A DNA stretch of 64,000 nt from assembly GCA_047495785.1 (NCBI GenBank), contig JBLDXI010000013.1, positions 3,844,001-3,908,000 of the forward strand. The letters run 5' to 3'. The position numbers were made by a program, and so were the translations under genes. Position 1 is the first letter of the stretch; the number at the start of each line of letters is the position of its first letter. The notes beneath the pieces were generated by a model that saw nothing but the letters and a program-made list of their open reading frames with translations, had not been told where the DNA came from and did no database searches. Shown piece by piece: positions 6,196-63,770 of the stretch. The DNA is from Lepidodermella squamata. Lineage: Eukaryota; Animalia; Gastrotricha.

Positions 6196-6330
6196 CTAAG
6201 GCCATGCAAGATCTGTACCTGTCCTTAGTCTACGTGCTAAATGTAAACAGCGCCTACAGCGATAACTGATTTCATGACGAATGAAACAGCCAACACCACC
6301 AGTAAAGATTTCGGCAGAATCAGTCTTGCT
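6196..6330 (-). mobile_element. Possible degenerate LINE endonuclease fragment
   Basis: GGVGCFIRHEISY resembles the GGGVxxxV motif of APE endonucleases. Short and otherwise unsupported. Confidence 0.3.
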
Positions 6331-6554
6331 CCCGCAGCATGCCATAATCGAGAAACAGAAACACAAAAATACTAAATTTGCGCGGGTAGTTATCACATTA
6401 AATTTGCAAAATATGCAAAATCAATAAATAATTATGGTTCGTTTAAAATGAAACGTTTAAATAATAGCAGTTACTATGGAGATGGCGTTTACGTAACAAT
6501 TGGGCCTTGTATTGATATCGCGATTCTATTTTTCAAAGCCTATACTCAACCAAA

Positions 6555-7248
6555 GTGAAGAAGCTAGGAAGCCTCATCGGCGACAAGGAGGACTTGGAAC
6601 ATCGTATCCATCTATCGTCATACGCCTTCAACAAGCTCAGTGCCATCTGGAAATCGAATGTCAGGGTCGATCGAAAAGTCAGGATCTACAATTGCAAAGT
6701 GTACTCCATCCTAATGTATAACTGCGAAACGAGAGGTCTAACATCAGACCAGGAGGAACGACTCGATGCCCATCACCGGAGACAACTGCGCAGGGTCCTA
6801 GACATCTACTACCCAGAAGTCATCACCAATGCTGAACTATACGCCAAGACAGGCACTACACCAGCCTCGGAGACAGCCAGACTGAGAAGATGGCGTCTTT
6901 TCGGCCACATTCTACGGCTACCGGCAATGACACCAGCGCAAGCTGCGATGGACCTGTATTTTCGAGCTGGGGGCCAACCATACCTTGGACGGGGTCTGAC
7001 CACACTGCCAAAAGTGCTAGCCAGAGAAATAAGGGAAGCACACAACCACCTCAAAGTCATATATGAAGACCACAACTACGGGAAACTCTGGTATCCTGAT
7101 GTAGCCAGCGCAAAAGACATGGCGATGCTTCGCGATCTCGCCAGCAATCGCAACGGATGGCGACGACTGACCGCTCGAATCTGTACCTCCGCGTCGAAGG
7201 CGGCGAAACCCTCACGGGTGTAAAGCCGTAATCATCATCATCATCATC
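6555..7248 (+). mobile_element. 5'-truncated RTE-like non-LTR retrotransposon 3' fragment with (ATC)n tail and 13-bp TSD
   Basis: ORF 6555-7223 has KVRIYNCKVYSILMYNCET, HRRQLRRVL and RRWRLFGHILR, typical of the RTE ORF2 C-terminus. (ATC)n tail at 7231-7250. Direct repeat ATACTCAACCAAA at 6542-6554 and 7249-7261. Confidence 0.9.
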
Positions 7249-7622
7249 ATACTCAACCAAATGTAATATACTTTATTTTCTTTATAGCTCCGTCATTAAA
7301 TTATCTTATATTTTGGCTCCGTGAATTACCTCTTGTAAATTATCTCTACTCTTGTAAATATTCCTCCAAACTAGTCCTTTGGTAGCTTTCTTGCTACGAC
7401 GGCGTTTGTAGGCTTCGCTGAGTGAGTGGAAAAGCCACCTGGGCACTAATGCCTGGGCCCTGGAGAAACAGTCAGCAATAACTGGAGTACCAGGGGTAGG
7501 GATTTCAATTATGTAGTTATTAAACCAGTTTCAAACTTTCCTAGAGCGTAAGCTCGCGATTTTCTCACAAGCTCCGCCTTATGGTGAAAGCTTGAGTCCG
7601 TCAGGGCGAGGAGAAATCGTAA

Positions 7623-7652
7623 ATCCTGATCCTGATCCTGATCCTGATCCTG
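7623..7652. repeat. (ATCCTG)5 microsatellite
   Basis: Seen directly. Confidence 0.9.
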
Positions 7653-8316
7653 CGAGCACGCGCATAATGGTTGGCTTTTCCTTGCTTCCACCTTCGACCA
7701 TGCAATATACATACTTGGCTGTCGCATGTACATACAGCCCATTATTTGTCTTACTAGCAGGGTTGCGAAGTACTATTCCATGTGGTTGGTCCACGTTGTG
7801 CTGGGGCTATGTAGTTTTCTGCTAAGAGAAGATTTTACGTTTCTTTATATTTGATCATTTACTGGGTCATTTATTTGATATTGGTCATTAATTGCTTATT
7901 TAGACGCCGGAGCGACCTGATTTTACCGAATGTACCGAATTGCGAATTATTAGGCATTATTAGGCCGAAATAAAGGATAGGACCAGACCCTTTTATGATT
8001 TTAACATCGTTTTGCAGCGATCTAACCAGGCACCAGGCAAGCTGGTTGGTCTGATAATGGTCTTTGAAACTTTAAAATACCGTCCCTTATAAATCTATTT
8101 ATATGATAAATTCTTGTTTCTTGTGATCCTTCTGTCCTCATTTGCGCGGCTAATACATATGTATTACATATTCTTCTTTACCGGTCACAATCCAGTCTCT
8201 TGTGCCATCACTTACACCAACATTTCATTTAGTTTGAATTGCTAATAATTAAATGTAAAGTGAACCTTAAAACTTAAAACAATAGTGATTCAGATTTCGT
8301 CGCGATTCCTATTTGA

Positions 8317-58890: not shown

Positions 58891-58906
58891 GGCCCTGAAA
58901 AGGGCC
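58891..58906 (-). promoter_or_regulatory. Histone 3' stem-loop (H2B)
   Basis: GGCCCTTTTCAGGGCC. Confidence 0.95.
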
Positions 58907-58948: not shown

Positions 58949-59323
58949 TTATTTCGAGCTGGTGTACTTGGTAACGGCCTTGGTGCCTTCAGAGACAGCG
59001 TGCTTGGCAAGCTCACCGGGCAGCAGGAGGCGCACAGCCGTTTGTACCTCTCGACTGCTGATGGTGGCCTTCTTGTTGTAGTGGGCCAGGCGCGACGACT
59101 CGAGGGCAATACGCTCGAAGATGTCGTTGACGAACGAGTTCATGATGGCCATGGCCTTGCCGGAGATGCCGGTGTCAGGGTGAACCTGCTTCAACACCTT
59201 GTAGATGTAGATGTTGTACGACTCGCGGCGGCGATGGCGCTTCTTCTTCTCGCCAGCGGTCTTCGGCTTCGCGGCCTTCTTCGAACCCTTCGAAGCGACT
59301 TTACCAGTAACCTTCGGCGACAT
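58949..59323 (-). CDS. H2B: Histone H2B (separated from its promoter by a LINE insertion)
   Basis: [22 protein letters not shown]...[21 protein letters not shown]. Confidence 0.98.
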
Positions 59324-59348
59324 GATGATTGATTGAGATTGTAAGCGG

Positions 59349-61102
59349 TTTTTTTTTTTTTCCAACGGTCTTGTTTTATTGGAAAAACGGTCTCTTGTTT
59401 AACAACTTCTGACCGACAGTAGTAGCAATGATATCAAATGCAGCAAATCTTAACAATTACAGCATATGTTATGCGTTTCATCTTTTTATAAAAAACAAGA
59501 AATATATATGACAACGCACACACTCATTTACAGTCGTGGCACAGGGCTAATGTGGTTTTGTTGTTTATTTTATTTTGTGTATATATGTGTATTGTGTATG
59601 GGTTTTTGTCGTTTTATTTTCTGTATTAAACTGACTGATGCTCATATAAATACATAGATAGACAAGGCCTAACGGCCCACAAAATTGATGAACTGTCCGA
59701 GCGGGGTACCAGCCACGCCCCACTCTCGACGATGGTCGGCGATCATGGCGGCGACTGGTGGCACGAACTGCATAGCCCGATCAGCAAAGCCGACTGCTAG
59801 TTTCAGCCAGCGGCGTTCCAGCGGCTCCACTCCAGTTAGGCGGTAGAGCTCAGATTCGTCCTGCTTGTCCAGAATAGACGAGCCGATGATCGCCCGCAAA
59901 CAGTTGTTCTGCAGCACGATCAAGCGCTTTTTCTGCGCATACGACGCATCCAACCAGGCCACACAGGAGTATTCAAGAACCGGTCTCACGATCGTCAGAT
60001 ACAGCAACTTCCGCGAGGCAAAGCCAAGCGGCGAACCAGGAAAGCAGACCCGGCGAAGAGCCCCGAGTCGAGATCGCGCATCCGCCTCGATGTTGTCGAA
60101 ATGCGGCTTCCACGATCCGATCGCGTCAAACGTGACACCCAGGTACTTCGCCGTCGCGACCTTCGGCAGCTTCTCGTCACCCACAAACAGCCGGTCGTCG
60201 TCGTTGACTTGTCCGCCAAACCGCAACATTTGGCACTTCGGCGGACTAAGCGGCAACTTCCAGAGTCTGCTCCATCGAGAGACCCGCGTCAGCGCCGTCT
60301 GCACCCGCTGCTTCGCCATCCCAGTGTAGCAAGCCACAGCGAACAAGAGCACGTCGTCAGCGAACGAAGCGGTGAAGGCCTTGCGCTCGTCGCTGTTGTT
60401 GTCCGGCATCAAGTCCGCTGTGAAAAATGCAAAGAGTATAGGGCTCAATGAGGATCCTTGCGGAACCCCTGAGCCGATATCTGCTGTCTCACTGAAGGAG
60501 CTACTCACCTTGACCGTAAAGGTCCGGCCGGTCAGGAAGGACGAGACCCAGCGCACCATTGATCTTGGAACAGCGACGCAGTCTCGAAGCTTCACGCGCA
60601 GCGAGTTGTGACACACCGCGTTGAAGGCGCCTTCGAAGTCCAGCAGGGCCGCGATCATCACCATCTTCGTTCGACGACGCCGCGCCATCGCTCTGGCCTG
60701 CGAGAATCGGAAAGTTTGATCGCTCGTCGATCGGCGTATCTGAAAACCAGACTGATGATCAGGAATTATATTATTTGTCCTGAAAAGAAGAGCTAGCCTA
60801 GTAGCCAAAATGAGCTCTAGCAGCTTCGCAACTGTCGGAAGAAGCGACACGGGACGGTAACCTGACGGTTTCGACAAGTCCTTCCCTGACCTCGGAAGCG
60901 GGACGATAACGGCCAACTTCCACCTCTCCGGCACGAACCCACAAGCTAGGCTATAATTGTACAAATGGCGCAGATACGCCCAAAGTACCGGCCCACCCTT
61001 CTTGATGAGCACGTTCGAAATCTCATCACGGCCTGGAGCCTTGAGCTTCAAACGTCGAACCGCGCTTCTCATCTCAGCCCTTGAGATCATGACTTTCACG
61101 TC
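59349..61102 (-). mobile_element. 5'-truncated Jockey/I-group LINE with open RT ORF (59669-61090), AATAAA, A13 tail and TSD
   Basis: KAPGRDEI, YRPVSLL, QSGF, GVPQGSSLSP and FADD. AATAAA at 59375-80, A-tail at 59349-61, TSD ATTGTAAGCGG(T) at 59338-59349 and 61103-61114. Confidence 0.95.
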
Positions 61103-61114
61103 ATTGTAAGCGGT

Positions 61115-61471
61115 GATAACGCAAAAATTATTACAACTTCCGAACAATCTAGGCGCGCACTTTCGCGTTCCTTTTAACATCCGGTCGGCATTAGTGCGCG
61201 CGTCCTGTTACGCTAACGAGTGTGCCGTTTCAAATTAACGACACGTGCCTGGACGCGAGCAATAATTATTATAAAGACGCGCGCGCGGTAAAAGCACGCA
61301 ATCTGATTGGCTAATAAAGCAATAAACAATGTTTCGAAAATTTGAATTGTGCAGCATCGCGAAATAAATGCCAGCCAGGGGTATTTAAGGGAAATTCAGG
61401 TGTTCAGAAAATTTGTTCGTGCTCAGACTGCAAATTTTGCATTTTAAAGCTTATCAACATCATCATCAACA
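61115..61471. promoter_or_regulatory. Divergent H2B/H2A promoter
   Basis: CTGATTGG (inverted CCAAT) at 61303-10, GCGCGC tract, and TATTTAA at ~61382. The same motifs recur between H4 and H3. Confidence 0.65.
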
Positions 61472-61915
61472 ATGTCCGCTCCAGCTGCTGGTCGTGGTAA
61501 GGGAGGCAAGGTTAACCGCCAGAAGGCCAAGACGAAGTCATCGCGTGCTGGTCTCCAATTTCCGGTCGGTCGTATCACCCGTCTTTTGAAGCGCGGTAAC
61601 TACGCCGAGCGTGTCGGTGCAGGTGCGCCCGTGTACCTCGCTGCTGTCATGGAGTACCTGGCTGCGGAAGTCCTCGAGTTGGCCGGTAACGCCGCTCGAG
61701 ACAACAAGAAGACCCGCATTGTGCCTCGCCACATCCAACTGGCCATCCGCAACGACGAGGAGTTGAACAAGCTGCTGTCGCACGTTACGATTGCTCAAGG
61801 TGGTGTTCTGCCCAACATCCAGACCGTCCTGCTGCCCAAGAAGTCGGCCGAGGCCCCCGCTGCCAAGCCGGCGACTGGTGGCAAGAAGAAGGCCGCCGCA
61901 AGCCAATCTCAGTAA
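61472..61915 (+). CDS. H2A: Histone H2A with extended H2A.X-like C-terminal tail
   Basis: [13 protein letters not shown]...[20 protein letters not shown] followed by [23 protein letters not shown]. Confidence 0.97.

Positions 61916-62779: not shown

Positions 62780-63770
<991 letters not shown>

Follow-up and report, generated by a model that had tools for sequence, protein, structure and literature searches.

Among the known LINEs, CRE, SLACS and CZAR are similar to NeSL in being spliced-leader-specific. The ORF2 of R1-clade elements harbors a Cys-His motif downstream of the reverse transcriptase (RT), and three CCHC knuckles in ORF1 are typical of R1/I/Jockey-type gag proteins. Three groups account for most target-specific LINE families, namely, the early-branched lineages, which possess a restriction-like endonuclease, and two clades, Tx1 and R1, that encode an AP-type endonuclease (APE) (PMC4640811). 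Spliced-leader exons are among the known LINE targets, and the spliced-leader-specific NeSL families belong to the lineage with the restriction-like endonuclease (PMC4640811). A limited literature search returned no report of an APE-type LINE targeting the spliced-leader RNA gene. Here, we describe a truncated copy of a family of this kind, embedded in the putative 5' leader of one histone H2B gene of Lepidodermella squamata, within a stretch of 64,000 nucleotides (the window). We suggest, with a probability of about 0.9, that a site-specific LINE has recently inserted here off target, by accident, and that the event is an ordinary gene-disrupting one.

The direct reading of the minus strand of the window revealed, in this order, the H2A-H2B promoter, ACCGCTTACAAT, a retrotransposon of ~1.75 kb, AATAAA, 13 A, ACCGCTTACAAT again, 14 nt of leader and the H2B ATG. 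The upstream copy of the 12-bp target-site duplication (TSD) is located at 61103..61114 and the downstream one at 59338..59349, the first A of the latter (59349) being common to the TSD and to the poly(A) tail (59349..59361). The body of the 5'-truncated non-LTR retrotransposon spans positions 59349..61102 and comprises the RT part of ORF2, the 3' UTR and the poly(A). Its polyadenylation signal AATAAA (59375..59380) lies 51 nt ahead of the H2B ATG (59323), with the A tail beginning 13 nt further on and ending exactly 25 nt before the same ATG. The element is co-oriented with H2B. The junction at its 5' end exhibits a 1-nt microhomology and gives rise to a two-codon uORF (ATG ACG TGA, 61096..61104), whose start codon is made up of an A from the target, a T of ambiguous origin and a G from the element. 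The duplication on both sides, the position of the tail, the co-orientation, the junction uORF and the AATAAA preceding the H2B coding region had been listed in an initial annotation of this DNA, and all of them are present.

The same target is found only once, as ATCACCGCTTACAATCT and at an equal distance from the ATG, in five paralogous H2A-H2B spacers (L038, L039, L042, L043 and L045); thus, the 12-bp repeat is a genuine TSD generated by the insertion and not a chance repeat. The TSD, the A tail and the 5' truncation are footprints of target-primed reverse transcription, and the family is devoid of LTRs. These features support the idea that the element is a co-oriented, 5'-truncated LINE placed by this mechanism in the putative H2B leader. 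The published L. squamata assembly, which is likely the source of this sequence, derives from one animal whose DNA had been amplified by multiple displacement, a method known to yield chimeric reads (PMC11660948); a LINE fragment might have been joined to the histone locus by a chimera of this sort, or by an assembly error. However, such an origin, which we consider very improbable, would explain neither why the very site present once in the paralogues is duplicated here over 12 bp nor why an A tail occurs at one junction and the H2B leader resumes in register.

The insert separates the H2B coding region (124 aa, 58949..59323 on the minus strand; Pfam Histone, E 1.8e-20) from its promoter. A histone 3' stem-loop, GGCCCTTTTCAGGGCC, can be read directly downstream of the gene on the same strand (58891..58906), and an Rfam scan for the histone stem-loop after H2B gave no match at the gathering threshold; histone fold and 3' stem-loop are combined as in replication-dependent histone genes. 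The divergent partner, H2A (61472..61915, plus strand; Pfam Histone_H2A_C and Histone), is intact, and the window also contains H4 (62780-63091, minus strand) and H3 (63360-63770, plus strand). In the whole genome (121 Mb, 151 contigs), there are 20 full H2B genes, which are dispersed over many contigs in ~20 H2A-H2B pairs and are not arranged in the tandem repeats assumed by the initial annotation. Nineteen of them are uninterrupted, each lying head-to-head with an H2A gene 266-404 nt away. The protein encoded by the disrupted gene is identical to at least 18 of the 19 other H2B proteins and shows 100% identity to all 19 wherever they align, the alignment of L053 starting only at residue 24.

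The alignment of the 20 H2A-H2B spacers allowed us to delimit the shared divergent promoter (61115..61471), including, on the minus strand, an H2B TATA-like box TTAAAAG (consensus TTAWAAKG; 61177-61171) and, ~25 nt past it, the block GTTCGGAAG (61145-61137), which is shared by all 20 H2B genes and is followed by ~50 nt of leader up to the ATG. The H2B transcription start, placed on the basis of promoter conservation, would lie at or near GTTCGGAAG, so that the insertion site, ~30 nt further on, would fall within the 5' leader. In the divergent promoters (window and L038-L056), a near-invariant block lies next to each gene, GTTCGGAAG towards H2B and GAGCACGAAC (reverse complement GTTCGTGCTC) towards H2A, both of them ~25-30 nt past a TATA-like box, and it is possible that these blocks represent a histone-specific initiator. 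The disrupted locus also has its own peculiarities. The H2A partner carries a private A14V substitution (all the 19 other H2A proteins read GGKANRQK at this point), and the promoter has a private 14-nt deletion, unique among its closest paralogues, that includes the ATTGG (CCAAT) box; both could be due to chance, or the H2A-H2B pair could already have been under relaxed constraint. All 20 replication-type H2A proteins (147 aa; window and L038-L056) have a long basic tail ending in SQSQ, that is, an H2AX-like motif on the bulk H2A.

The search of the genome with the element at the DNA level yielded more than 100 candidates, 40 of which were scored and turned out to be 99-100% identical to it; no histone gene was found within 1.5 kb of any of the 29 other family loci that were fetched. 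The 3' ends of the family were then counted through a pattern built on the 21 terminal nt of the 3' UTR, which gave 92 copies, plus one more, for a total of 93. As many as 77 of these 93 ends share a single nucleotide position within the intergenic spacer of the rDNA: in 72, a run of 5-21 A is followed by TTAGTATCA; three show the TTAGTATCA flank with a small target deletion; and two have diverged versions of this site. The remaining 16 (~17%), which include the window copy, are off-target, scattered on large contigs and surrounded by unrelated flanks. Two of the other off-target copies, read at both ends, possess their own TSDs of ~9-10 bp and different 5' truncations.

These data bear directly on the proposal, advanced in the initial annotation, that the family targets histone genes in the same way as R1 and R2 target rDNA. 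The one co-oriented insertion in a histone leader, with clean hallmarks of target-primed reverse transcription, speaks in favour of it. Nevertheless, the comparison of all the histone loci revealed that only one of the 20 H2B genes is occupied at this site, even though five of the 19 empty ones offer an identical 17-nt sequence, and the flanks of the family copies, once listed, place most of the 3' ends in the rDNA-spacer spliced-leader gene and none of the 92 others beside a histone gene. Taken together, the 20 H2B loci and the 93 3' ends refute histone targeting for this assembly, and we assign next to no probability to it. What holds of the original comparison with the rDNA- and snRNA-specific LINEs is site specificity itself; the target is a different one, that is, the spliced-leader gene of the rDNA spacer.

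At this home site, the copies share an identical upstream flank and an 11-bp TSD, TTAGTATCAAT, and differ in the point of 5' truncation (oriented-locus positions 181, 597, 625, 844, 1155 and 1310). Independent truncations, which the initial annotation had proposed to look for in the histone genes as a sign of targeting, are therefore found at another locus, with at least six truncation points. According to Rfam, the site is flanked by the 3' end of the 28S rRNA gene and by an oppositely oriented 5S gene, with the 18S rRNA gene starting ~1.3 kb beyond it; both the element and its spliced-leader target are antisense to the rRNA genes. Tandem head-to-tail (telomere-like) arrays, taken into account as a source of the common 3' flank, were rejected, the flanks being 28S, 5S and 18S. 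Approximately 393 apparently intact target sites, with a spacing of ~8.46 kb, were counted, and their comparison with the occupied ones indicates that about one-sixth of the rDNA units carry the family.

Immediately before the nick site lies ...ATTAAATTTTCTGAG, with GTTAGT after it. The 15-mer followed by a non-G base occurs 14 times in the genome, to be compared with ~0.4 occurrences expected from base composition and none in a reversed control. In 12 dispersed loci, the match extends to a unit of ~31 nt, AATATCTGCGATTGAATATTAAATTTTCTGAG, whose 5' ends fall within a few nucleotides of one another and which is joined exactly after GAG to unrelated sequences. These 12 loci are the footprint of retrocopied trans-spliced RNAs, and the home target accordingly lies where the leader exon of a spliced-leader RNA gene meets the intron, with the GT donor next to the exon; the Rfam search gave no spliced-leader match at the home locus. 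Most often, the nick follows the first nucleotide of the intron (GAGG^TTAGT); in a few events it is displaced by 1-4 nt, with an overall spread of 0-4 nt. Among the leader retrocopies (L080-L092, e.g., G000:C15:4161881, C28:111046 and C54:1650825), three have a common downstream sequence, ATTTCTTAATAAAAATAATT..., which suggests a repeated family whose RNA might have been trans-spliced before retroposition. Moreover, three copies of the element (L002, L016 and L028; G000:C93:188063, C88:171707 and C90:36312) are embedded in a second, diverged spliced-leader-like gene (…TTTTCAGGGGTTAGTATCATTTCCG…), so the family uses both paralogous leader genes of the spacer.

By eye, the leader sequence TATCACCGCTT resembles TATCA(TCA)CCACTT of the home site, and the duplications at the two sites both end in CAAT, so that the endonuclease might have been misdirected by the likeness of the H2B leader to its own target. 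We regard this possibility as remote: the best local alignment between the two 61-nt sites scores 7, a value equalled or exceeded by 66% of random 61-mers from the window (P = 0.66), which led us to reject target mimicry, and the nick positions have no correspondence in the by-eye alignment. Furthermore, no motif common to the flanks of the other off-target copies was found in their 300-nt 3' junctions, a comparison that covers both ends for two of these 15 copies and only the 3' flanks for the other 13, and with which a weak secondary preference is compatible. Downstream of one off-target copy (L064, G000:C2:1155110) lies TGTAGTATCTG, whose resemblance to the home site GGTTAGTATCA is faint; it may be a degenerate solo leader-like sequence.

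A full-length copy of the element, of ~8 kb, was identified on contig C89 (L034), and the window copy corresponds to positions ~6230-7974 of it. The window copy is also 100% identical over 1,750 nt to six rDNA-spacer copies (L003-L005 and L008-L010); with zero differences over this length, the insertion is very recent. The ORF2 of the full-length copy encodes 928 aa, with an AP-type endonuclease at residues 37-216 (Exo_endo_phos_2, E 1.1e-12; Exo_endo_phos, E 1.2e-9) and the RT at residues 530-776 (RVT_1, E 4.8e-28), and it ends ~150 residues past the RT. No restriction-like endonuclease was found after the RT in ORF2, and a regular-expression scan for CCHC motifs detected none in ORF2 and three in ORF1, whose product is gag-like, with ~600 recognisable C-terminal residues including the three knuckles. 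Ahead of ORF2, the full-length copy contains an open frame of 1,612 codons (L034:3253-8091, minus strand), the first ~900 of which are repetitive (ADVTAFGG.SVS.TP.R and LLPKPSAA units) and have no Pfam match; this upstream part of the ORF1 frame may be an untranslated, unusually long open 5' UTR. As for its 5' junction (L034:8113-8145, minus strand), ~26 nt of the spliced-leader intron precede the first unique base, in contrast to the 11-bp TSD of the truncated copies, and the next ~20 nt of the element are also intron-like (TAG..TGC..GG pattern); this could reflect either a long TSD or a target-derived 5' end.

The best PDB matches of the RT are those of R2 and of L1 ORF2p, which are generic RT matches, and no match to the PDB endonucleases of R1Bm, TRAS1 and L1 was obtained at E<=0.01. 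The closest relatives of ORF2 in a word-based search of 5.8 billion proteins are three metagenome-derived proteins (P0001-P0003), sharing 74%, 52% and 51% identity with it, the next one being 26% identical; the three have the same domain order as ORF2 and presumably come from related uncultured animals.

Like NeSL-1 in nematodes and CRE, SLACS and CZAR in trypanosomatids, the parent family inserts at a fixed position of a spliced-leader gene, in the sense orientation behind the leader exon. Those elements, however, have a restriction-like endonuclease downstream of the RT, whereas in the parent family an AP-type endonuclease (Exo_endo_phos) occupies the N-terminus and no domain follows the RT; hence, it is not a member of the NeSL/CRE lineage, and the choice of the target is all that they have in common. 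The R1 and Tx1 clades (R1, TRAS/SART, Keno, Mutsu and others) share with it the combination of APE and RT, multicopy RNA-gene or repeat targets, short TSDs and frequent 5' truncation, to which its R1/I/Jockey-like ORF1 with three CCHC knuckles can be added, but they differ in the target, and the ORF2 of the parent family is devoid of the Cys-His motif after the RT. Finally, the window copy is reminiscent of dead-on-arrival, 5'-truncated LINEs such as the gene-disrupting L1 insertions, being a single sense copy in a 5' UTR that brings its own polyadenylation signal and splits the promoter from the coding region; what distinguishes it from them is that the donor is a site-specific family and that the gene belongs to a 20-member H2B set encoding an identical protein.

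The truncation, located upstream of the RT domain, leaves an open frame of 473 codons plus the stop (59669..61090, minus strand), with its ATG at 61090 and its stop at 59671-59669, corresponding to ORF2 residues 456-928. The RT domain (RVT_1, E 1.5e-28) with its FADD motif is present, and a Pfam search detected no endonuclease domain in these 473 codons, as the initial annotation had described. The frame has zero differences from residues 456-928 of the intact ORF2; therefore, FNAVCH, previously suspected to be a mark of decay, is the normal motif of the family. By the same token, the RT frame is open through youth, and its openness is no evidence of selection or function. The product would retain everything from the PGRDE block, which we take to be domain 0 of LINE RTs, to the C-terminus, together with the Asp of LLDFEGAF, taken to be the catalytic residue of the FNAVCH motif; it is devoid of the endonuclease and of a linker of ~225 residues, which precedes the RT core according to the alignment to human L1 ORF2p residues 390-675. 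A longer in-frame ORF (503 aa) from an ATG at 61180 appears in the ORF listing, but this ATG lies upstream of the conserved H2B TATA box and the ORF is probably not transcribed.

This organization, with an endonuclease-less RT frame behind a histone promoter whose core (TATA and GTTCGGAAG) is kept in all 20 H2B genes, is in agreement with the initial annotation and makes a chimeric transcription of H2B leader and RT plausible. One might go further and suppose that the insert has captured the S-phase H2B promoter, so that a chimeric mRNA would supply the cell with an endonuclease-less RT acting, for example, in endonuclease-independent insertion at DNA breaks, or would itself serve as a trans-mobilised template. 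Indeed, the sense-oriented insert lies downstream of the intact promoter core, its RT frame runs uninterrupted from the PGRDE block down to the natural stop with no difference from active copies, and the insert retains the 3' UTR and the A tail that recognition in trans requires. Against this, the junction between H2B leader and RT occurs once in the 121 Mb, even with 2 mismatches allowed, which means that no retrocopies of a chimeric transcript (daughter copies, used as a genomic proxy for it) exist in the genome. Moreover, translation is disfavoured by the junction uORF, which has an A at -3 and ends 5 nt before the main ATG; the protein would do without the APE and the linker; the open frame, given its zero divergence, carries no evidence of selection; and the private 14-nt deletion has removed the ATTGG box from the promoter. 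All this makes promoter capture improbable. We likewise judge it quite improbable that the H2B promoter expresses, in S phase, an H2B-leader::RT mRNA yielding a stand-alone RT at replication-associated breaks or an RNA mobilised in trans by full-length relatives; if this were true, a dead-on-arrival stray of a spliced-leader-gene-specific LINE would have become a new, differently regulated source.

Based on the whole body of data, we propose that this stray insertion of the spliced-leader-gene family most likely occurred as follows. The parent element, equipped with its ORF1 and its ORF2 (AP-type endonuclease and RT), normally cleaves the bottom strand at the end of the leader exon, 0-2 nt beyond its final base, and inserts there by target-primed reverse transcription, leaving the 11-bp duplication. 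About one-sixth of the copies have inserted elsewhere. In one of these events, the nick probably fell in the 5' leader of an H2B gene, where the poly(A) tail served for priming, and reverse transcription ended after ~1.75 kb, with the consequent 5' truncation and the 12-bp duplication. Transcripts starting at the H2B promoter would then run into the LINE fragment and be polyadenylated at its AATAAA, so that this H2B copy, one of 20, would lose its expression and be effectively silenced. The cost of this loss is probably small, given the 19 other genes with an identical aligned protein. Leaky scanning past the junction uORF might still allow translation of the RT frame; any RT made from a chimeric RNA would likely be a by-product, limited by this uORF and deprived of the endonuclease and the linker.

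The insertion is in itself ordinary, amounting to the loss of a single histone gene, out of 20 redundant ones, to a truncated transposon copy. The stray copy, however, tells something about the family from which it comes. It represents a calibration point for the off-target rate of the parent family (16 of 93, ~17%), its zero divergence from the rDNA copies indicates that the family is active now, and it reveals that targeting is leaky and that off-target events can strike genes. The locus also offers a clean natural test of the ability of a host promoter to restore the expression of a truncated site-specific LINE.
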